From Pecten maximus (lineage: Eukaryota), in the NCBI RefSeq assembly GCF_902652985.1, contig NC_047017.1, positions 28,582,001 through 28,646,000 of the forward strand: a DNA stretch of 64,000 nt, written 5' to 3'. Position numbers and translations under genes: made by a program. Below, in pieces: positions 12,471 to 27,700 of the stretch (within the stretch, counting starts at the first letter, position 1; the number at the start of each line of letters is the position of its first letter). The notes below the pieces were generated by a model, which saw nothing but the letters and a program-made list of their open reading frames with translations, was not told where the DNA came from and did not search any database.

Positions 12471-12616
12471 TTTACACAAACTTTGAATTCATCTCATTTC
12501 ATTACTATTTAATCCATTTTTACATACCATATACCATTTCCATAAACTAGATTTGCAGAAGACAGCTATAGTACAACAACGTATATATATTATAGATATT
12601 TCTGTTTGAAATGATT

Positions 12617-13825
12617 AACAAGAGATCCCAGAGGGATCTTGGCGCCCACCATTGAATGATCTTCATAGGTTCCATGTCAGATTGATCTTTTCTCTTTTTT
12701 CCCTTCCTCTTACTAATCTGTGTAAAAAAGGGAAACTTATATATGAAATTTAAGATTTAGCGATAATGGTTGTCTGTCGACAATGTTTTCAGATTGGTCC
12801 AAAAATGCAATACGACGGACCGAGGAAAGCCTACATATGAAAATTGAGAAATGTCCCTTCAGTTCTTTCCATGTTGTTATCCGATTGGTCCCAAAATGCA
12901 ATATACATAACAAGCGACCAAGGGGAACCTACATATGAAATTTGAGAAGGATCCTTTCAGTACTTTCTGAGAAATAGCGATAACAAACTTCAATTGTCAA
13001 AATCCAAGATGGCTGGCTGTTGGCCATGTTGTTTTCCGATCCGTCCCAAAAAATGCAATATGCATAACTAGAGACCAAGGGGATCCTACATATGAAATTT
13101 GAGAAAGATCCCTTCAGTACTCTCTCAGAAATAGCGATAACAAACTTCAATTGTCAAAATCCAAGATGGCTGGCTGTTGGCCATGTTGTTTTCCGATCCG
13201 TCCCAAAAAATGCAATATGCATAACTAGAGACCAAGGGGAACCTACATATGAAATTTGAGAAAGATCCCTTCAGTACTCTCTCAGAAATAGCGATAACAA
13301 ACTTCAATTGTCAAAATCCAAGAAGGCTGCCTGTCGGCCATGTTGTTTTCCGATTGGTCCCAAAATGCAATATGCATAACTAGGCACCAAGGGGAACCTA
13401 CATATGAAATTTGAGAAAGATCTCTTCCATACTTTCTCAGAAATAGCGATAACAAACTTCAATTGTCAAAATCCAAGAAGGCTGCCTGTCGGCCATGTTG
13501 TTTTCCGATTGGTCCCAAAATGCAATATGCATAACTAGGCACCAAGGGGAACCTACATATGAAATTTGAGAAAGATCTCTTCCATACTTTCTCAGAAATA
13601 GCAATAACAAACTTCAATTGTCAAAATCCAAGATGGCTGCCTGTCGGCCATGTTGTTTTCCGATTGGTCCCAAAAGGCAATATGCATAACTAAGCACCAA
13701 GGGGAACCTACATATGAAATTTTAGAAAGATCCCTTCAGTACTTTCTCAGAAATAGCGATAACAAGAATTGTTTACGGATGGACCACAGAGGCAAGGCGA
13801 TTTGAATAGCCTACCATCTGATGAT
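12617..13825 (+). mobile_element. Non-autonomous pearl/HINE(Helentron)-like element with internal ~155-bp tandem repeats, copy 1
   Basis: AACAAGAGATCCCAGAGGGATCTT 5' hairpin, about 6 tandem 155-bp units, GGAC-type microsatellite remnant and a damaged terminal hairpin; same family as 38723-39913. Confidence 0.8.
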
Positions 13826-15272
13826 AATAATACGTGAACCAACCAAGCTTGTGCTGAGTTTGTGCTGAGTATGATAAACTGAAAAGCATGGTTTTATTAA
13901 TCAAATGCTAAGAAGTTTTGCTTTCAATTCATCTTTAACCTATCTTTAACTTTAGCTCACCAGCTGGCCAGAAGGGCTCTTAAAATCCCTACTAGACCTG
14001 AACACCTGAATTGATTTCCCCATAATTATCAAAATATCCGGGTGAGCATGCAGGCCTTCTTGTTGTCTAACAGACCCATGGTGACTCTCTAAGTCTAATT
14101 TACCCAATATTTGCCCTTGTAGCAGCAACCAGTATGTCTGATGGACTTCAGGCTTCTGAAGCATGGCTTTGATAACCAGTCTGCCATTCTTCAAAACAAG
14201 ACCAGTTTGCACATGCGTGCACGACACATTTTCTATAGCTCACATACATCATAGGTATTGAGAGTGGAGCACTGCATTAGACATTCCTCCAGAACAGTGG
14301 GTAGCTTCTCAGTTGTTATTGCAATTGTCAAGAACTACTGTAATGATTCTCTTATTATATCAGAATGAGGTACACACATTGAGGTATATATTCTAGCATT
14401 CAATATATTTTTTTGTAATTTTATCATAATTTATATGTTACGAAAACAGAGAGGCTTTCAGCATACCATCAAATAGATCTGATATCAGAAGACAGTGTAC
14501 AGTTAGATACTGTGCATGAAGAGTGATGTATAAAAACATGTTTTCAGTTATTTTTATGAATTTAAATATGGTAAAATGAACAATTCCCAAGACATCAAAA
14601 GTTTCAACAACAATTTAATGAATCATGATTTGGTAAAAAATATTACAGAGGAAAAGAAACTACATACAGAGAGAATTTATGAAATTAACACCAACTAGTA
14701 TTTGATGTTACAATCTAAATGTGATTCATACCCAATTATATTTCAACCGATCATTTCAGATATCCTTATTTGAAATAAAGTAAATAAACAAAACAAACAT
14801 TGGAGACTAACTCGACACTTCCTGCTAACTGATGCTAGACCTACAGAACAAACTAACCCTTGCATGCAGCATGTCAGTGTTATTCTGTGGATAATTCTTC
14901 TGAACAAAGTTTAAACAAAGGATCTACCTATTAAATGTTTAATAAATGGATACAACATAACACTGACAATGAACTGACGTTTTATGATAATGTAAAGGTT
15001 TCAAAGTTTAAATGAAACATAAAACAGAGTTCATTTTGAATAAATGGTTCTTCGAGGACAATCACATCTGCTGTGTCTATATTAAGTTCCAAATATTAAA
15101 AATGATCATTAATGGAATGGCCAAGGTTGTTTTTTCGAATTTTCTTTTTATTTGTTCAAAAGTCATGCCAACATACCTCATTACATAATAAAACTACCTA
15201 GAGTGTACAGATCTATCCAGATGTACACTGTACTCTCCAGTACACAATCAGTATAACTAAACCGCTACATAA

Positions 15273-15932
15273 AACAAGGGCCCAACGGGCCTGAATCGCT
15301 CACCTGCTATCCAGTGATCCTTTCATACATTAACATAATTATCAATAAGTATATCAGAGACCAGATGTAAGATCTTGGGGGTTCCCGGTTATTTGAAAAG
15401 GTGTCTATTTAACTATTTCAATATTAAATCAAGGTCAAGGTCATTCATTTGAACAAATTTCCTAATCCTTTACCCAAATATGCTACAAGTCAAATATCAG
15501 GTCTCTCGACCTTTTGGTTATTGGGATGAAGTCATGGAAATATTTTAGTCTCTTTGACCACTGTGATTTTGGATAAAGGTCAAGGTCATTCCTTTGAACA
15601 AATTTAGATGCCTAATCCAGCATGCTACATACCCAATATTAACTCACTAAGCTTCTTGTTTACTGAGAATGAGTCATTTTAACTATCTTAACCTATTTGA
15701 CCCCTGTGACCATGAACATATTACAAACCAAAAATCAGGTCTGGGCATTTTGGTTATTGAGAAGAAGTCATTTAAAGAATTTAGCCTATCTCACCCCTGT
15801 GACCTTGAATGTAGCTAAACGTCATTGTTTTGAACAAACTTGGTAGGCCGGAGGGACAGACAGACGACCGGACAGAGGATGGACGCCGCACCACGGCATA
15901 AACTCATTTGCCTTTCAGGCAGATGAGCCAAA
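15273..15932 (+). mobile_element. Non-autonomous pearl/HINE-like element, second family (AACAAGRGGCCC...GCTCACCTG)
   Basis: 5' AACAAG plus short hairpin, internal degenerate repeats, GACA/GACG microsatellite, 3' hairpin CTCATTTGCC..GGCAGATGAG. Confidence 0.7.
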
Positions 15933-16023
15933 CATAATCTGACCCAGCTTCAACTCCCTCACATGTTACTGTCACAATGATATATGATGGATACTGATGA
16001 AAAGAATGGCAGTGAAAGTTTGT

Positions 16024-17934
16024 TTATGATGATGACGCTTGCTTTCTTAACATCACATATATCTTCTCTTTCACCCAGTCTTTGTTGTGAGGAACATATG
16101 TGCCAATCTCTTTGTTAAATCTGAAAAAGACAAACATTTCACTATCATAATGGAAAATAATGGTATATATTACAACAAACCAGGGCTGTTTTCCTTTATT
16201 GCATTGCAAACGGTTGGACCAGAGATGTTTGTTTATGAAATAATGATAGACCTAATAAGTTTGTTTCTTTTGGAAAACCCTTGACAAAGACTTCCAATGC
16301 ATGCATTAATATCTGTAGGTTCAACAAGATTTAAGCAGATGCAGCTTGTTATGCATGTATGATGGAAAGAGCTAGGTCTATCAGAAATGTGATCAAAGAA
16401 GAAAGTGTTGTTTTTTTTTAAATAAACTTGTACAGCAGGTAGGATCTCTCTTCAGGAACAAAATAATCAAGTGTAATGATGGGATGTACAAGGTGTAACA
16501 AAAGCTAGAGGTACAAGAGTGAAGGTCAGTACTTACACTAGACAGCTGAGGTCAGCAAGCTGGTCCAGGAAGTCAAACAGCTGTGTAATATCATAGGTAA
16601 TGGAGGGACGATCGGCATTGACTTTCTTCAAATGCTCCTCAAATATCTTACAGATACCTACAATGTAGATTCAATAAATAGTTTTTATCCCAAAACACTT
16701 TTATTAGACATATTGCCAACAAAAACATTTAGGGGTACATATATCTTTCATTAAAAACAAGAGGCCCAGATGGCCTGTATCGCCCACCTGGTTGATTTGA
16801 CCAACATGAAAATGTGTCAGCCCCATCATATGTATAAATTTGAATCCCAACCACCTAGGGATGTTACCACTGAAATATCAATATCATACATTGTTCAGTC
16901 CCAGAGAAGAAGTTGTAAATATCAATATTGACAGATGAAATCCTTTTTGCCCCGCCCCTCATCAGATCCCTGGGAAGCTAGCCTCATCATTTTCACAAAT
17001 GTGAATCCCAGCCACATAGGGATGCTTCCTACCCAATTTGATTAAATTCTGATAAATGGTTAAGAAGAATTAGATTGTTGACGGATGCCATGGTATGGCA
17101 TTAAAAAATTGATCAGTGTGACATCTAAATCACTTTACATAATACAACATTTTTGTAAATTATTTGTTTGGTATGGAAGAAATATCTTTGATATCTGGAC
17201 TACAAATAAAAGCTATAAATCTTTTAAGGAATGATTCACCCAGGTTTTAGAATAACCTCAATGTAACAATATACAGATTCCACATGCCATACTCTCACTA
17301 TTGTTACCAACCCAGGCATTCTGATCCATCAGACTTACTTCCCTTTGTTTCACTTGTGATAACTTTAATGACAGCTGATGACCGGGGCATAGAATGCATC
17401 CAGGGGTTCAAAACATACACTCAATAGGTGCTACATTTAGATGTAGATTTGTAAGAAATTTTACTTAACTGCAAGAGAGTCGGGTAGTATTAGATAAATA
17501 TAGGTAGGCATTTAAAATATCCAAACAAAAAATAGAGTCGGGTAGTATTAGATAAATATAGGTAGGCATTTAAAATATCCAAACAATCTTTGGTGAGTGG
17601 TGGTACATTATATGTATACCCGGTAGATATATGTTCCAAACAGTCAAAAATAAACCGAGGGCCATAGCTTCATATATGGCTGGGAACACGACTCCAACCT
17701 TTGTATACAATAAGTAGTCCCAAGAAACAAGTAGAGGTAAAATAGTTTTAGCAAAGACATACCCTGTATGTCACCCATGATAAATTCTGTCAATGACAAG
17801 CTAGGTGTAGTAAGACGTAATTAAATGTGTATCCCTGATCATTTACCTTCCATGCATTCATTGATAGATTCAAAGTCGGAGTAGGTCCGTGTCTCTGGTT
17901 TCTGTGAGGCCTGCACAAGGAGGATAGAGTGAGC
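16024..17934 (-). CDS. ERH: Enhancer of rudimentary homolog, distal copy (ERH-A); exons 2-4 at 17934-17847, 16657-16537, 16120-16024; ATG exon not located nearby; 102 aa with the Met
   Basis: Translation [30 protein letters not shown]|[40 protein letters not shown]|[31 protein letters not shown]; 88- and 121-bp exons with canonical GT-AG sites. Confidence 0.95.
16756..17105 (+). mobile_element. Degenerate pearl/HINE-like element in an ERH-A intron
   Basis: Starts AACAAGAGGCCCAGATGGCCTGTATCGCCCACCTGG, as in the copy at 22069. Confidence 0.65.
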
Positions 17935-18694
17935 CTGGAACACACAAAAATAACTGGTGTTTTGTTTGTTTAGAATACAATGACAGAGTTTTGAAAATAA
18001 ATGGTTTTTTTTTTCTGAATAGCAAAACTAAATCATGTTTTGAAGATATCACCAAGAACAATAACATCAAACACATATAGGTTCCTTTTTAATGGATGGT
18101 AAATATATATTACTTTAAAAAAGATATGGAGGCTGTAAGCTAGTATGCATTGATTCACCTAATAATAATACACGTCCTATTAAAATAGGAGTTTAATGCA
18201 GTGATGATAATCTGCAAATCTACATTTCTTTCATTGGTAATGTTTGAAAATATTTCACAGGAAGCTGGAGTTAATGTTGCAATTCCCTTTCTTACATAAT
18301 TACATCTTAATCAGTTCTACAGTGCACATTTTCAGACCCACTTCTAAGATTTCTGAATAATATATGTACATCTTTCTAATGTATGAAGTTTTTAAAGATG
18401 AATTTATCTAATGAATATTTCAATGTAAATTTGAATTCATATTGAAGAGACCAACAACAAGAATTACACACAACTATATATCTCACCTGCCCTACTTTGT
18501 CAGTATGGTATAGGAAACTTCAAAATTTACTATTATTCCCCAAATTACCAAACTTTTCATGTTGATCATGTATATTATCATCATATTAGAATATTTTTTT
18601 TTACAAAAAAATCAATCTGGAAAAATATCTAAATGGTGCATTGAAATGTTTATGCTACAATCTAACTATATTTCACTTTTGATTTTGACACTGC

Positions 18695-19240
18695 TGTTGT
18701 TACCAGAACAGTAATATGCCAACCAGTCTTGTTACCACATGTACAGAAGTAATAGGCTAACCATAGACTTGTTACCACATGTACAGAAGTAATAGGCTAA
18801 CCATAGACTTGTTACCACATGTACAGAAGTACATGTAGTATGCTAACCATAGACTTGCTACCACATGTACAGAAGTAATAGGCTAACCATAGACTTGTTA
18901 CCACATGTACAGAAGTAGTATGCTAACCATAGACTTGTTACCACATGTACAGAAGTAATAGGCTAACCATAGACTTGTTACCACATGTACAGAAGTAATA
19001 GGCTAACCATAGACTTGCTACCACATGTACAGAAGTAATAGGCTAACCATAGACTTGTTACCACATGTACAGAAGTAGTATGCTAACCATAGACTTGTTA
19101 CCACATGTACAGAAGTAATAGGCTAACCATAGACTTGTTACCACATGTACAGAAGTAATAGGCAAACCATAGACTTGTTACCACATGTACAGAAGTAGTA
19201 TGCTAACCATAGACTTGTTACCACATAAGTAATATGCTGA
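18695..19240. repeat. 40-bp minisatellite (GTTACCACATGTACAGAAGTAATAGGCTAACCATAGACTT), about 13 units
   Basis: Clear tandem period of 40. Confidence 0.92.
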
Positions 19241-20186
19241 TCATGACCTTAGTCTTTGCTTTTGCACTTTCTCGTTCCTGACGAGACAAATGCCAGATGA
19301 TACAATGGCTGTCTTTTATAAATATGGTATATTATCTTTGACAGTTTAAGAACTATATGAAGCTACAAATTCCTTTTTGTATACTTTGACAGCAATAACA
19401 AAGAACAATTACGTTATCTTCATCATTTTATTACAAAAATGTCGCTATGTCACAATTTACCAGAATAGTACAATTTTATCATCACAATCTTAGATACTTC
19501 TATATTTCATTAATTTCCCACAGATACAAATTTCTAAGAAAATAAACAGCAAATAGTGCACTAATTGACTTGACAAGAACAGAAGCTTCATGCGCAACTT
19601 TTCACTCCACGATTTTGTGTATTAGCATATATAACAAATAATAAAGCACTACAGCATTAAATATTCACAGGGAAGATTAACATTATTATCAAGCAACAGA
19701 TCATGCATCTACTATTAAACCAGCTAATCCTCAGTAAAAAAACACCTACCCATATATACTGCATTCTGCTTTTTCAGTGTCCCATCCTTTTACAATAATT
19801 TAACATATCATCAAAGCTTCCCACAAAACATGACGATGAGTATTCTTTAACTAATAAATTGACCATATTAAATCATGTACGCTTAGTTTAGTCTACATGT
19901 TTACAGCCAAACATTGTTTGCTTGGAGTGAGTGGGGTCATGAAGTTTTTACATTAAAACAAGAAGGTTCCTCAGGTTAATTTTCAAGCTTTCCATTAACA
20001 CTGAATTTCCTTTGTCAAGCAAATTGTGAAATACATACATGTATGTTATATGGTTCAGATGGTCTAAGGTGAAAGCAGCTGTCAAGTTTATACCCTACAC
20101 TTGCAATACAGGTAGCATACAGCTATACGCTAAAGGCAAAAGCTCACTGTAAAACACAAACATCCAACCTTGAATGATAGTTACAA

Positions 20187-20585
20187 AACAAGTACTAATT
20201 GTAACAGCGGCCGTTATTAAAATGTCCCCCAAACTACTCCAACAGTTGTAAATCATGTTACCATGGCAACACAGGTTTTCGAAAGTGGTACCTTTGTGTT
20301 CGGCTTTCCTCAATACCCATATGTACCAATTTTCACTAAATTGAACAATATCTAAATTTCGACCAATCAAAGGCCACAAAATGACGGCCATTTTGAATTT
20401 CGTTGCGAGACATGCGCGTTGCACACCTTCTACCCCCACCAATACTCATGTGAAGTTTAATAATTATCCGTCCAGTAGTATAGGAGGAAATCGCTGGACA
20501 AGTTCACAACGGAAAGACAGAAGAATAATAATAAGAAACGGAGCAAACACAATCTGTCCCCCCACTTTGTTTTGGGGGACATAAT
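20187..20585 (+). mobile_element. Short pearl/HINE-like non-autonomous element
   Basis: AACAAG start, subterminal TGTCCCCC, 3' hairpin TGTCCCCC..GGGGGACA. Confidence 0.6.
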
Positions 20586-21737
20586 AACTTAACTATAAAT
20601 TAATGATAAACATATTACATAAAGAAGCTTTGATATACCTCTGAACATATTCAATGTGAACATTCATTTATACTGTCAGATCCTTTATCACATAGAATAT
20701 GAGAGAAATATGTTGTGAAAATGGAAGTTGTTTTCTCTAACCATGATACCAGTCTTATTGCAAGTCAACATCTCAATGTTAAAATGCTATGTTAGTTATT
20801 TTACTTCTAAAAGACACATTGGTTGTTATCAAACCAGGTAAACAAATATTGTGAAAACAATTTAAATACTCATTTTAATTGAATTTACAATTCATTACAT
20901 AAGTTAAAGTTTTCAAATCATCATTTGCTGTCTTAAAACCAGACACACATTGAAGACATTTAAAATTAAAATTAATTTCTTTTGTACAGGTACATATCAC
21001 AACCTTGTACATATTTTCATATTAATATATACAATATATGTACATTCTTGAATTAACCAGTAAATAGAGATTTTAAGACACATCGCCCCTATATCACAAT
21101 CACCCTATTCCTCTTTGGTTGAAGGCAAAATTTCTAGTGATAATCATCCTTTATTTTTATGTCCATTCAGAGTCTTGTGTTGCTTCATTGCATGGAAATG
21201 GAAAATACTCGGATTTAAAAAGGAGTCAAGCCAACAAAACAATGTCATGTTAACTTGTCAAGCCATTTAAATTCTTTGATTTCCTTTCTTAAAATAAACA
21301 GTCTTGGCAAATATCCTCTGTTGATTTACATCACTCAAAACATATATGATCTAATCACTTCAGGAGCACAAATTCAACGAAAAATGCCTCATACACATAT
21401 TTTACTGATAATTATTCGATGGTTTGTCATCTCATCCACATAAATCTTATTAAGATGTTTATATATGATTATTACGGAAATAAACATCACTTTCCTAATA
21501 GAAAAGAAAGAACTTTATGTGATTTTGGAACATGGTCATGCACTGCTCTCAATACATTATCCCAATTAGCTGAATTGTCAGTTTTGCCATTTCCTTTTCA
21601 ATGTTCCTGATGACTAAAACTTCATATACAGATTACACTTCATTAAAGAATAAAAATCTTGTATAAAACATCATTCCCGGTTCAAGACTGTTCCATCCTT
21701 ATTTTGATGCCTGTGCTAAAACAGTTCTAATTCATCT

Positions 21738-23656
21738 TTATTTTGATGCCTGGCGTCTCAGCATGATGTATATCTTTTCCTTCACCCAGTCTTTATTGTG
21801 TGGTATGTAGGACTTTGAGTGTTTCTGGAATCTACAAATCAAGGAAACATATAACACTGAAATGTACAGAAAATATGTCAGATTTCTGTTATCAAATCTA
21901 GTTAGCAATGAATGTAATATGAAGTACAAATACCTGGTTTTCCAGTGAGGAAATTATTTCCAGGAAACCAATTAAGGGTTGTTTCAATATTACAACACAA
22001 TTTACATTTCATTAATCACTAATAAGATTTTCATCCAAACAATAGTTGATTTCTGTAGTTTATATCACAACAAGAGGCCCAGAGGGCCTATATCGCTCAC
22101 CTGGTTGGATTTGACCAAGCGTCAAAATATGCTCATGTTCAATTTGATAACAGCTTTATTTGTGAATGTCTAACAATGCTATATATAGTTATCATCATGG
22201 GGAAGGGAACTCAATTGCTTCAAAGATAGAACCCAAAAATGTAGTCAAGTCTCCCTCTGGGAGTGGAAAAACCCAAAGAATTATTTCCACATCATGATTG
22301 TGTTTAAGTAACCAAGTCCACTAGGGGTGGGGAAAGACCGAAGGGCCTATTTCTACAACATGATTGTGGTTATCTCATGGTGGCCAGCGATGCCACATAT
22401 GGTTATGGGTTGAATTGGGAATCTCAACATTTTCAACACAACAAAAAAAGTGTTTATAGCAATATGGTCAAGTTGCTCACTTTTTGGCCCTGCCCTGGGG
22501 GTCAGCTGGACCATTTGTACATTTTGAATCCCTACCCCATTTGGATGCTTCCAGTCAAATATGAATGATTTCCATTGTTTAGTTTCAGATTCCGATCAGC
22601 GGCTATGAAGAAGAAGTCAATTGTTGACAGATGGATGCCACAGTATGGCATAAGCTCACCTTGGTCCTTCGGACCAGGTGAGCTAAAAATGTTGAGACAG
22701 ATGCTTGGTTTTTGTTTGCAAACTCCCAACAGTTATCTAACTGGCAATATCACAGTGAACGTTGATGTTACATTACAACCCCTGTCAGTAGCAAGTATTG
22801 ATAATATATATATATATATGTTAAAAGTTAAATTACCCAAAAAACATCATTTACATAATAGGTTTAAAAACCAAGTCGGTTTATGTAACAATTAAGACTC
22901 ACACAAGACAGCTGAGGTCCTTTAACTGGTCCATAAAGTCAAATAATTGACTGATGTCATAAGTTATGGAAGGGCAATCTGAATTCATCTTCTTCAAGTG
23001 TTCTTCAAATATTTTACAAATTCCTGTAAAAATAAACAAGCACAGTGCATTCAAAAATTCTTAAATTTATAAACAAAGTTAATACTCTACAGATCAAACT
23101 AAGGAAATTACCCCTAGCATGAAGCAAATCACTTTTGCAGTACATACAATCTAAACCTGCCCCACAATATTTATGAAGGAATTGCTTTAGTGTTATCTCA
23201 ATATGGAATGTTTCCATTTAATTTAAACTGAAAGGCTTTCCTTTTCATATAAATATGTACCTTCCATGCAGTCATTCACAGACTCATAATCAGAGTATGT
23301 CCTCGTTTCTGGCTTGTGTGTTGCCTGCACAAGCAGAATAGTGTGAGCCTGGAATAAGAAATGAAAATATATGTAATTGAAAACATTACATATAACATAT
23401 ACATATATATTGAAGTTGCAATTGTAGACCTGATGGCATTTTGTTGGAAATATACAAAACTTACACGAGACAGATGATTATCTTACTTTTTTGTATAAAG
23501 CTCATTATGGATGTTTAGTTGTCTACAAATGTCTTTTACAGACTGTCCACAGTTGCAATTTCTACTATACCTACATAAACATTATTATTGTATTTAAAAG
23601 CAATAGCAGGTTGAATTTTAGTATGCAAATTAATTTGCATGTAGTTTTATTACCAT
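21738..23656 (-). CDS. ERH: Enhancer of rudimentary homolog, proximal copy (ERH-B); ATG exon at 23656-23654 (or 24318-24316), then 23348-23261, 23023-22903, 21831-21738; 101 aa
   Basis: M|[30 protein letters not shown]|[40 protein letters not shown]|[30 protein letters not shown]; 88/121-bp exons, GT-AG sites; AAAATG|GTA first-exon candidates. Confidence 0.93.
22069..22689 (+). mobile_element. Pearl/HINE-like element in the last ERH-B intron
   Basis: AACAAGAGGCCCAGAGGGCC start, GCTCACCT subterminal repeat, 3' hairpin AGCTCACC..GGTCCTTCGGACC..GGTGAGCT followed by AAAAA. Confidence 0.75.
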
Positions 23657-23699
23657 TTTCCCCTTCATCTGCTTCGCTTATGCTTCTGATGCCTCACAC

Positions 23700-24747
23700 A
23701 GCAATTCAACTGTGAAACAATGTCACAATCTGCACGACGTCACAAATTTTCCAAAACGGTGAGAATACCGACAAAACTATCGAGCGGTATAAACTAGAAC
23801 CCATCAAAATTTGACTTAAATCAAATTGGTTAACTATTGACACTGCGTGACAAAAAAACTTAATATCAAATATTATTTCAGTCATTTTAATATAAATAAT
23901 ATCAAACTATTGATTTTTTGTGTTCACGTGGACATTGCAGTATAAACGTACGCGTACAACGGAATGCAATGGGTGTAAACGTTTTATAAATATAAAATCA
24001 TTTCCGTACAAGTTACGGATATCGTTGATAGATAACTGTTAAGATATCGCATCTCCTATTAACTGGAACTTCACGCGCGTAATTTTAACCTTCTGGTACG
24101 CTGGTGAAGCATCATCCAGCAAACTGAACGCTCCAAATCATGACAAGCAAGGGCTGCAAAACGTGCGTGGGAAACGCGATTCTATTAGCATGCATATATA
24201 CCAATATATAGCTTGTTTTCGTGTCAAAGTATGTCATATAAGAAAATATGTGACATATTTCATCTTTAAATGCATAAATTGGACAGATAAAAGGTAGCAA
24301 CCACACTATTTTTACCATTTTCAACGGGAAATATTAGGAAAGTATTTTCTCGCAAAATCTCCTCGTAGTCACTGCGGGATTGGATGTGCGGATCTCTCTT
24401 GTTTTTACTTCAGATTTGATATTCGATTTGAGAAACATCCCGAAAGACAAATTTTATTCAGAAATATTTTGCGATCCAAACATACGATTTCTGTCCTTTA
24501 AGAGTATTTATAACTATTTTAGGCAAAATATTTTTGACCGTAAATATATTTTGATCGCCTGGACAAATAAAGAAAGTAGCAAGCAGCTCGCAGTGTCGAC
24601 ATTCAGGATCAGTCATAAGCTTTAAAATCCAAATATGAATAAAACGTTTTGGTGATCTCAAAATTTGAGAGCCATGTAGGCAAAACCTGGAAACAGCTGA
24701 AACGAGAAAGGTTCAACATTTTTTTGTCAAGTTAAAGAAGAACAACA
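23700..24747. promoter_or_regulatory. Putative bidirectional promoter region between ERH (minus) and SLC39A9 (plus)
   Basis: Divergent start codons 430 bp apart (24318 vs 24748); locally CpG-retaining relative to both gene bodies; CRE-like GACGTCA at ~23736. Confidence 0.65.
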
Positions 24748-27700
24748 ATGGACGACGTATTAACTCTCATTTTGTTATCATTTGCCATGCTTGTTGGATG
24801 TTACCTAGCTGGTATGATCCCGATTGCGATAACATTTTCAGAGGTAAGTCGCTTCCAGCTGTGTTGGTTCGCAATTGTGCACTGAGAAACTGGTGATCGG
24901 TACCGGTTGTCCCTATCAGGTACACGTACCACTCGTCAGTCTACTACTGGTTACCTTCTTCCATGTATAACAATACCTGGTTCATTTGAGATATGGATTT
25001 TTGGAGATTTTTTCAAGTCTGTTGGATATATTGGGCGGTCCTCTGGTGAAAGTGTCTGGTTGTCACATCAGATTCATGAATCATATAAATACTGATAACC
25101 TCTTTCTACAGCAATTTTATAATAACCAATTTGAGGTATATCTTTGTTGCTAAAATTCTCCTAAATAACTTACAACTTAACTTTAAAAAAAATCCGTCCA
25201 AGTCGTATATATTTAAAAAAATATCTTAATTAAAGAGCTGAAATCATATAATTGTCAAGTTGATAATAATAATAATATATCCTTTTTTTGTGACTGGTAT
25301 AGAGACTTTATATAGAAGTCCTGAACCGGAAATAAACTTATATTGTCTGATTTTATTTAGTGATGAAACATCAGACAAATGCAAAAATAAAAATTATTTG
25401 AACATTGAAAAGTACCAAAAATTGAAAAAAGAAGAGAAAAAGTTTTGAAGTAAACAGTGCTTGGCCTATAATATGTGAGTTTTAGAGCTGTGTATCGCAA
25501 AGTGGGTAGCGATACGATTCATATCGCGGTACAGGGGTCACAATACGATTCATATCACGATATATGAGAAGCTGATGACCTATCAAATATCTGATGTTCC
25601 ATCTCTTACAGTTGTCATGTTTTGTTTGTGGTATTTTCTGAATATTAGAGTCCCACAAAGCATTCTTGAATTAAGATAATTTGGATTTGAAAGAATTCCA
25701 ACTGGCAGCTTTATATGCCGCTAGAACGACCTTGTCAGCCATGTTGCAATTGTTTACTACAAAACGTAAGCTAACGTTGGTCAAGGGAGATAACTACAAA
25801 TTTTCAAGTATCGCGATATAAATAAAGGACAGACTATACATCAATTCACCACTCTGCGATCCAATACATTGATGCATCTGTGAATCGTTACACCACTAGT
25901 GAGTTTGCTTATCATACGCAAGCTGGCATTTTCCCCCAACCTTTTGTGCCATCTAATATAATTATTATCTACTATATGGATTAGTGTTGTACTGAATTTT
26001 CAGAGTTTTTAGTTATACAGTATACTATATACATATGTACACTTGTAATTATATCGCTACCTTTTGTCCACAACAGTTATGGCCGCACGGTATAACAAGG
26101 GTGGCGATAGTATCAAATTGTGAAAATAACAACTATGGAATTGTAAAAGAGACTGCATTTCAAACGTTTTTTTAAATGCAAGTTTGAATATATATAGTTA
26201 ATATTGTCACAAATGTTTGATTATCAAAACCTTCTGTCCATGATCTATTAGTGTGTGGTTTTGTTTTGGAGTTTCCATCTCAACTGATGTAGCCAAATGT
26301 TCATACCACATATACACAATAAGCATACAAAGTGAGTTTGAAATCTGTCATGTTTTTATTACAAACAAAATCATAAGTGTCAGGTGTGACATAATAGAAA
26401 TATCCGATTATTGATCTACCTGAGCGAAAAAGCATCAAGCTAATTTACCTGTGCAATTTACAAGTGAAAACGGGAGATAACCTTAGTCTATAAATTAAAC
26501 ACTAAAGAGTTCCTTGATCACCAAAACCAGAACAAAATAGCAATGTTGTTAAGGAAGATATAAAGCGATTGGGAACGTTTGTATTGTAACAAACATGGTG
26601 GATGATATGGGGGTATGTGAGTGTGGCAAACTTAAAGCCACATACTCCCAAAGAAATGTTTACATTTCGAGCTCTTTACAGTTTTCAGACTTTAATAGTA
26701 TATACGGTACCTAACAAATTATCGTGAATCAAAAACTGAAAATGTGTATTTATGAAAGTATACGGGAAATTCCCAAAAATTATAACTGGGTCAGACAGAC
26801 CAAGTTTCTATGCGAAATAGTCCCATAACGCAACGGCGGGTTATCAGTCTATACATAATGGCGGAACGCTGAATGCGTGAGCCTGCCAAAACACACACAA
26901 GATTCTGCCAAAAAGAAACGTACAAGGGTCTGGAATCGGCAGAACCCGAGTACATTTGTATTTCCTTAGGTTGTATGCATATTGCTACATTTTGAAATTA
27001 AGGTATTTGGATGTATGTTTGTTTATTATTTTGTTCAGTAATTATATATAATTACGCAAATATTCTGTTAATGTTTGAATGAAGCTTTATTAGGCAAAGT
27101 TCACGTATACACTGTACTCGAAATAATGTAAACAACGGCCATGCATGTGTGTAGTTTATTTTCAGTGCACGTTGTTATAGCCTTGTTCTTGGCCCTAGCT
27201 GTGACAAATCTCGCGATAAAAATAACTGCGACAAGTTATTTCTATACACTGATGTCTCAAGGATTCCCGTGGTCTAACATCCAGGCAGCCTCATCAGTGA
27301 GGCTAGTGGTCATTTTAATGTTAGGAGAGCGTGAATGAGCATCTTGGATAGCCATTAATACATGTGTGCAACAAGAATTTTATGCTATTTGGGTGTATGT
27401 GTCTTCAACGCGGGAATTATATAGGAGGGTCAAGGGTACACTAGTGTTTAGCTCACCTGCCTGAAGGGCAAGTGAGCCTATGCCTTTGTGATCATGAGGC
27501 ATTCGTCGTCCGTCGGGCATCAACATTTCCATTTAAACAACAACTTCTCAATAACCAATTGCAAGAGGCTTGTAGCATGCTGGGATGAAGGGCTACCAAG
27601 TTTGTTCAAAAGAATGACATTGGCCAACATTCAAGGTCACATGGGTCAAGTAGACTAAGTAGACTGATATTTTTAAATGACTTTTTCTCAATAACCAAGA

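Follow-up and report, generated by a model that had tools for sequence, protein, structure and literature searches.

The locus analysed here lies in a 64,000-nt stretch of the genome of the scallop Pecten maximus (NCBI RefSeq assembly GCF_902652985.1, contig NC_047017.1, positions 28,582,001 to 28,646,000 of the forward strand; hereafter the window, which contains no N and in whose coordinates positions are given) and encodes the enhancer of rudimentary homolog (ERH). Exact exon location revealed two intact sets of ERH exons 2–4 in tandem on the minus strand, and a single upstream first exon, exon 1a, is spliced to both. The proximal copy, ERH-B, consists of exon 2 (23348–23261), exon 3 (23023–22903) and the coding part of exon 4 (21831–21738, stop codon 21740–21738), and the distal copy, ERH-A, of exon 2 (17934–17847), exon 3 (16657–16537) and the coding part of exon 4 with its stop codon (16120–16024). 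AG acceptors and GT donors are present at all six exons, intron phases are the same in ERH-A and ERH-B, and exons 2, 3 and 4 measure 88, 121 and 94/97 nt, respectively. Read from an exon 1 that contributes only the ATG, the open frames translate into 102 (ERH-A) and 101 (ERH-B) residues, with 80 of 102 aligned columns identical (79%), 21 substitutions and one C-terminal indel. Both match the Pfam family ER (PF01133; curated cut-off 25 bits) over profile positions 2–98 of 98, with 152.1 bits for ERH-A and 155.7 bits for ERH-B, and both resemble the human ERH structure 1w9g (E 1.6e-47, residues 1–100 aligned without gaps). A first-pass annotation made from the sequence alone had described two intact exon 2–4 sets differing at about 21 residues and had noted that exon 1 of metazoan ERH genes holds only the ATG; exon location and translation agree with the former, and the gene structures of scallop and oyster with the latter, since the scallop gene follows the metazoan plan of an ATG-only exon 1 and three coding exons. 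For translation and substitution analysis the exons were joined in scripts, and identical database proteins were used in searches.

When the entire 918,306,378-base assembly was searched in six frames, ERH exons were located at this locus only, and no further ERH copy or retrocopy came to light. At the DNA level, the alignment of ERH-A with ERH-B is confined to exons (75–88% identity) and the introns do not align; because only the exons can still be aligned, the duplication is old. Exon 1a, whose sequence also occurs once in the genome, is placed at 24316–24440 on the minus strand from contig ends in two sequencing runs and from conservation; it comprises a 5' leader and the ATG at 24318–24316, followed by a phase-0 donor GT at 24315–24314, and the sequence ATG|GTAAA at this point is kept in the scallops Ylistrum balloti, Argopecten irradians and Mizuhopecten. 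Contig text extends to 24344; the upstream limit of the exon is approximate.

Splicing was analysed in Logan contigs from four public runs from four studies (X1, X2, X7 and X8), which were found by a search with positions 15700–24450 and mapped on 17830–23829. This evidence consists of assembled contigs with short overhangs rather than raw reads; such contigs drop rare forms, and their depth cannot rank or quantify forms. ERH-B splice joints (21831 to 22903, and the joint listed as 23022 to 23260) are present in all four runs, which must therefore hold spliced RNA. One 238-nt contig of run X1, a single unbranched record that passes from the acceptor through ERH-A exon 2 into exon 3, is made up of 28 nt of exon 1a text, positions 17935–17844 and 118 nt matching ERH-A exon 3; its 28 loose letters at 17935 equal window positions 24317–24344 exactly, and its other end maps to 16625 onward. 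Run X8 yielded a 2,672-nt contig comprising ERH-B exons 2–4 and the 3' untranslated region (UTR), in which the 23 letters before 23349 equal 24317–24339, and an ERH-B contig of run X2 has the same 23-letter overhang, judged by record coordinates. Because the exon 1a sequence occurs only once in the genome, which has no further ERH copy or retrocopy either, exon 1a is the sole source of these overhangs, and because identical exon 1a text precedes 17934 and 23348, the same ATG-only exon serves both bodies. The intron between exon 1a and ERH-A exon 2 spans 6,381 nt and holds all of ERH-B; as exon 1a joins 17934 as well as 23348, ERH-B is nested inside intron 1 of ERH-A. Thus, the shared first exon and the nesting proposed in the first-pass annotation are both seen in contig junctions (24316 to 17934 in X1, and to 23348 in X8 and X2), and its two AAAATG|GTA candidates, at 24318–24316 and 23656–23654, are correctly placed; however, of the junctions that it suggested counting, those from 24316 were found to both acceptors and those from 23654 to neither.

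An alternative interpretation of these overhangs is that they are chimeric joins created during assembly at short sequence common to both second exons, whose first 6 nt are identical; the overhangs, at 23–28 nt, are indeed short, and the contigs were built from 31-mers. The word length itself speaks against this. Overhang lengths appear to match the points at which an assembly graph of 31-mers would branch; in such a graph, the first word separating an exon 1a-to-ERH-B from an exon 1a-to-ERH-A transcript would hold 24 nt of exon 1a and 7 nt of exon 2. As this word reaches the first base at which A and B differ, every junction word must have been present in the reads. Moreover, the 28-nt overhang in X1 sits on an ERH-A-specific contig, and independent gene models in three species agree, so we consider chimeric assembly extremely unlikely. 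By the same reasoning, the 24-nt overhang points to X8 and X2 each containing both junctions, whereas an overhang of 29 nt, as in X1, would be expected if unspliced RNA were the sole competitor. Two other contig features were examined and set aside. A backward joint in X8 (21800 to 17844) belongs to an ERH-A mRNA contig whose exon 4 part was placed on the similar exon 4 of ERH-B because ERH-A exons 3–4 fell outside the mapped interval 17830–23829; the loose end of that contig equals window position 16028 onward, within ERH-A exon 4. A contig of X2 that departs from the local sequence at 18015, 80 nt upstream of ERH-A exon 2, was rejected as a candidate upstream exon: its loose text, of a repeat type, maps to another chromosome (C14) with 18 nt in common here.

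ERH-B has a polyadenylation site of its own near 19400, inside intron 1 of ERH-A. Single contigs that start in ERH-B exons reach 19393 in X8 and 19442 in X7, and another contig, from X2, stops at 19414; an AATAAA at 19432–19427 adjoins these ends. Exon 4 with its 3' UTR accordingly spans 19400–21831 (minus strand), with about 2.3 kb of UTR after the stop codon, and a block at the UTR end (19696–19480) is conserved in Ylistrum. In run X1, the ERH-B exons are spliced to one another in a contig that is unspliced over 23260–23829 and for about 515 nt beyond; if collinear with the genome, this contig would end near 24344, inside exon 1a, which hints at RNA that retains intron 1. The intron-1-retaining ERH-B contig and the exon 1a-to-ERH-A junction occur in the same run, X1, and X8 and X2 carry spliced ERH-B; such differences in contig forms between runs are compatible with regulation. 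Two stretches of the ERH-B intron between exons 3 and 4 (22030–22229 and 22630–22829) consist of high-copy repeats with summed contig depths in the thousands, and one repeat piece there also occurs in the ERH-A intron between exons 2 and 3 (16756–16819).

Tandem duplicates usually keep or gain promoters of their own, and the two bodies might accordingly be independent genes, with ERH-A transcribed from a promoter and an ATG exon located between the ERH-B poly(A) site and 17934 and the exon 1a-to-ERH-A junction reflecting rare read-through; contig cover of 17935–19400 is thin, and rare forms drop out of contigs. We nevertheless consider this very unlikely because no joint into 17934 from within 17935–23829 appears in the contigs of the four runs, the one acceptor-crossing contig goes to exon 1a, the region upstream of ERH-A exon 2 is not conserved among scallops, and RefSeq models in Pecten and Ylistrum give both proteins a common start codon. 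Other ATG|GT sites between the copies lie in the ERH-B 3' UTR (20744, 19866), in a repeat resembling a miniature inverted-repeat transposable element (MITE; 20264) or in a 40-bp tandem repeat, and, the MITE aside, observed/expected CpG is about 1 or more across 23600–24600 only, which makes this the only CpG-retaining, promoter-like zone. An ERH-A-specific first exon between the copies was rejected on these grounds, in keeping with the first-pass annotation, which had found neither a credible first exon nor a CpG-rich promoter-like stretch in the interval. The 40-bp tandem repeat occupies 18710–19226, between the ERH-B poly(A) site and ERH-A exon 2, in about 12–13 copies that are 90–95% alike; every unit contains ATG|GTTAG, hence many decoy donor-like sites. 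The MITE-like element (about 20240–20600, minus strand) has inverted ends and lies within the ERH-B 3' UTR; contigs break there or carry indel variants (a 38-nt skip and a 10-nt insertion).

A second first exon, exon 1b, ends in the ATG|GT at 23656–23654 and is placed at 23654–23760 (minus strand) from conservation in four scallops and a RefSeq isoform. A block of about 60 nt at exon 1b is near-invariant in the four scallops, and an in-frame upstream ATG (23668–23666) adds MKGK, giving the 105-residue RefSeq isoform X1 of Pecten (MKGK followed by ERH-B); the Argopecten equivalent starts with MTIKM. Extensions of the MKGK type are found in Pecten, Argopecten and Mizuhopecten and are not conserved in Ylistrum, where a 5-nt insertion in exon 1b (L006:11440–11477) puts the upstream ATG out of frame with the terminal ATG. 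No similarity was detected between exons 1a and 1b. Within the intron separating them, a non-coding element of about 115 nt (24076–24190, minus strand) is conserved in the four-species alignment; two cores within it, about 15 and 24 nt long, are near-invariant, and the element could act on exon 1b as a promoter or enhancer. It has no Rfam match, and one core can form no more than a 5-bp hairpin, without compensatory changes; a structured RNA or small nucleolar RNA in intron 1 was rejected, with no Rfam match at E ≤ 1 over 15000–25500.

The strong conservation of exon 1b and of the element upstream of it raises the question of whether the two first exons are interleaved, with exon 1a paired mainly with ERH-A and exon 1b mainly with ERH-B, each with its own promoter, such that promoter choice selects the protein. 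The RefSeq isoforms that join exon 1b to ERH-B in Pecten and Argopecten favour such a pairing, as does run X1, in which ERH-A is joined to exon 1a and the ERH-B contig has the intron from exons 1a and 1b to ERH-B exon 2 unspliced. However, the junction of exon 1a with ERH-B in X8 and X2 means that the pairing is not exclusive, no joint leaving 23654 is seen in the contigs of the four runs, which cross exon 1b unspliced, and in Ylistrum an mRNA initiated at exon 1b would carry an out-of-frame upstream ATG. We therefore regard interleaved first exons, which had been among the proposals of the first-pass annotation, as unlikely: exon 1a serves both bodies, and exon 1b is, judging by sequence conservation, an extra route to ERH-B.

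The order of ZIP9 head-to-head with exon 1a, followed by exon 1b, ERH-B exons 2–4 and ERH-A exons 2–4, recurs in Ylistrum and Mizuhopecten, and in Argopecten with ERH-A reduced. Two annotated coding sequences of Ylistrum balloti start at the same base, in the ATG of exon 1a, and end after ERH-B (101 residues) and ERH-A (102 residues); both were rebuilt exactly from the locus, which has a Zip-family gene head-to-head upstream. Mizuhopecten has exon 1a, exon 1b and both exon sets in the same order. Argopecten irradians retains exons 1a and 1b and an intact ERH-B; of ERH-A, it retains an exon 2 (L007:15989–16077) that matches Pecten ERH-A at 27 of 27 residues and has a 1-nt insertion near its 3' end, and neither ERH-A exons 3–4 within the next 6.4 kb nor an annotated ERH-A protein was found. 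This could reflect decay of ERH-A in the Argopecten lineage or an error in the assembly. The oyster has an ATG|GT exon 1, a single exon 2–4 set split at matching protein positions, and the same head-to-head ZIP9. Thus, the same layout was found in other molluscs as far as Ylistrum and Mizuhopecten are concerned, but only in part in Argopecten and not in the single-body oyster gene. Near ERH-A exon 2 of Mizuhopecten (L008:17061–17187), the 3' end of the exon, together with its donor, recurs directly behind in three or four incomplete tandem copies of the same 30–40 nt, with ESVNECMEGK-like frames. A satellite of about 155 bp lies downstream of ERH-A in Pecten (12610–13825), and arrays 79–86% identical to it lie between ERH-B and ERH-A in Argopecten (L007:13470–14628).

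The first coding exon of ZIP9 (SLC39A9-like) was identified by translation at 24748–24843 on the plus strand, divergent from ERH. The start codons of the two genes are separated by 430 bp in Pecten, by 429, 421 and 429 bp in the other three scallops, and by 567 bp in oyster, and this head-to-head arrangement implies that the promoter region is bidirectional. In human, ERH and SLC39A9 are presumably also divergent neighbours, on 14q24; if so, the pair would be a very old bidirectional one.

In a protein tree, scallop ERH-A (support 98/94) and ERH-B (89/88) form sister clades (90/89), and because they are sisters, the duplication is placed in the scallop stem lineage, later than the split from oysters and ark clams but earlier than the divergence of the four genera. 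Strong purifying selection maintains both bodies, as judged from the ratio of nonsynonymous to synonymous substitution rates (dN/dS) between Pecten and Ylistrum (0.020 for ERH-A and 0.029 for ERH-B). Synonymous divergence between ERH-A and ERH-B is saturated, and ERH-A evolves faster than ERH-B, most of all in Mizuhopecten.

Assignment of the two proteins to one gene is not new to databases, as RefSeq already lists ERH-A and ERH-B as isoforms of a single gene. Its three P. maximus ERH proteins have consecutive accessions: XP_033735181.1 (isoform X1, 105 residues) corresponds to exon 1b plus ERH-B, XP_033735182.1 (isoform X2) is identical to the ERH-A translation and XP_033735183.1 (isoform X3) to the ERH-B translation. 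The models in Pecten, Ylistrum and Mizuhopecten are automatic, are named 'enhancer of rudimentary homolog isoform X1/X2/X3' and carry no description; in Mizuhopecten, an older GenBank model merges the two bodies into one 217-residue protein. A word search with the open frame around ERH-A exon 2 gave one protein match, from Ylistrum balloti, and a database look-up returned no record for the Pecten 105-residue isoform or for Mizuhopecten isoform X2. No paper on this locus was found in a literature search covering scallop ERH and duplicates with a shared first exon.

We consider it highly probable that the locus is a single transcription unit of the type known from the C. elegans gene unc-60 (reportedly the subject of studies by McKim in 1994 and Ohno/Kuroyanagi in 2012 on the ADF/cofilins UNC-60A and UNC-60B), in which one promoter serves exon 1a and exon 1a is spliced to either of two complete ERH bodies. 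Transcription would start in the promoter region shared head-to-head with ZIP9, and exon 1a would give the 5' leader, with the initiator ATG as its sole contribution to the protein. Splicing of its donor to the proximal acceptor at 23348 would lead to ERH-B, the mRNA being cleaved and polyadenylated near 19400, with exon 1b providing an additional path to the same protein. On the ERH-A route, the donor would stay idle while RNA polymerase II crosses the ERH-B exons and poly(A) site, and would then be joined to 17934. Because ERH-A needs both an idle exon 1a donor and read-through of the ERH-B poly(A) site, trans-acting factors could set the choice; we infer that the choice is a competition under regulation, with the proximal acceptor and/or the ERH-B poly(A) site repressed or skipped, as by ASD-2 and SUP-12 at unc-60. 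The arrangement would have originated in the scallop stem lineage by tandem duplication of exons 2–4 without exon 1, and because exon 1 encodes only methionine, each duplicate would at once have been a full coding body.

ERH is a homodimer in the solved structures matched here, with dimerization through the beta-sheet face as a trait of the family, and the two bodies could give rise to heterodimers besides homodimers. A model of ERH-A with ERH-B scored 0.82 (best of three controls, 0.00), a mark that 51 of 78 solved complexes but just 2 of 108 mismatched pairs attain, with 100% contact agreement across three runs and a partner predicted local distance difference test (pLDDT) of 90. We caution that this model shows likeness to the ERH dimer rather than binding of ERH-A to ERH-B. 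Its predicted interface comprises 16 positions (residues 5, 7, 14–15, 17–20, 70, 73 and 76–81), and ERH-A and ERH-B differ at five of them (73, 76, 77, 78 and 80).

Several points weigh against the view of the locus as one unit with regulated choice. The exon 1a-to-ERH-A junction is displayed in one contig of one run, X1, which is recorded as RNA by guess only and was taken as RNA for its spliced ERH-B joints, and run X7 has no contig on ERH-A exon 2. Contig text covers exon 1a up to 24344 only, and, since contigs drop rare forms, a minor ERH-A-specific first exon or splicing of exon 1b to ERH-A may exist. In the four-species alignments, no conserved cis-element adjoins the acceptor of ERH-B or ERH-A (55–60% identity, no blocks), which leaves the proposed regulation unsupported by sequence. 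The seemingly decaying ERH-A of Argopecten indicates that the two-body state is not indispensable. Finally, the high heterodimer score may derive from the predictor having learned the solved ERH homodimer, and close relatives of a true partner usually score well too.

In C. elegans, the common first exon of unc-60 consists of the initiation codon only and is followed by two exon series, with ASD-2 and SUP-12 repressing the proximal acceptor in muscle (PMC3875643). The scallop locus resembles unc-60 in having an ATG-only common exon spliced to two paralogous, complete downstream series, each with its own stop codon and, as shown here for ERH-B, its own poly(A) site. The distal product in both cases needs the exon 1 donor to remain unused during transcription of the proximal body, and the intron-1-retained, otherwise spliced ERH-B of run X1 resembles the partially spliced intermediates of unc-60. 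In contrast to unc-60, the protein is not a cofilin but a small nuclear homodimeric adaptor, the paralogs are 79% rather than 38% identical, there is an extra conserved first exon (1b), and nothing conserved was found near the proximal acceptor, elements of the CUAAC/UGUGUG type not having been searched for specifically. The cholinergic locus (unc-17/cha-1, with VAChT in the first intron of ChAT) likewise has a nested body and a shared 5' exon, and both of its products, like those of scallop ERH, may be needed in the same cells; however, its shared exon is non-coding and its proteins are unrelated, whereas in scallop ERH the ATG lies in the shared exon and the two bodies are copies of one another. 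Mutually exclusive exons also arise by tandem duplication within a gene and have matching intron phases, but the unit duplicated in scallop ERH is a whole coding body with terminal exon and poly(A) site; because this unit includes both, the choice couples splicing to polyadenylation, and only the methionine is common to the two proteins. A pair of retained paralogs of the usually single-copy ERH is also seen in C. elegans erh-1 and erh-2, which show that ERH paralogs are able to specialize in their partners; ERH-2 is the subunit of PETISCO represented by PDB entries 7ejo and 7o6l among our structure matches. The nematode paralogs are separate genes with separate promoters and are far more diverged than the scallop pair.

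A locus in which a shared start-codon exon leads to two whole paralogous proteins, selected by splicing together with polyadenylation, is very rare, and unc-60 is the textbook case; the data support scallop ERH as an independent, conserved second example of this design in a different phylum and protein family, already implicit in RefSeq. The same design arose independently in molluscs, in a highly conserved and usually single-copy animal protein, where the ATG-only first exon lets a promoter-less tandem duplicate function from the start. Four scallop genera have retained it, with both bodies under strong purifying selection, although ERH-A seems to be decaying in Argopecten. The layout explains both the 'isoform' annotations and the older fused Mizuhopecten model. 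Scallop ERH offers a natural system for studying how a donor is held in reserve across a complete upstream body and its poly(A) site, and for asking if the homo- and heterodimers of ERH paralogs differ in function. As a tentative and rather doubtful extension, the locus may set the subunit ratio of an obligate dimer: if skipping of the proximal acceptor and poly(A) site is regulated, the one promoter would yield an A:B ratio fixed in each cell, and with it the mix of AA, AB and BB dimers. The partners of these dimers might then not be the same, since A and B differ at five of the 16 predicted interface positions and over much of their surface. If this were true, scallops would have kept such a switch since the origin of the family, and ERH partner specificity, together with the coupling of splicing to polyadenylation, would become testable outside nematodes.

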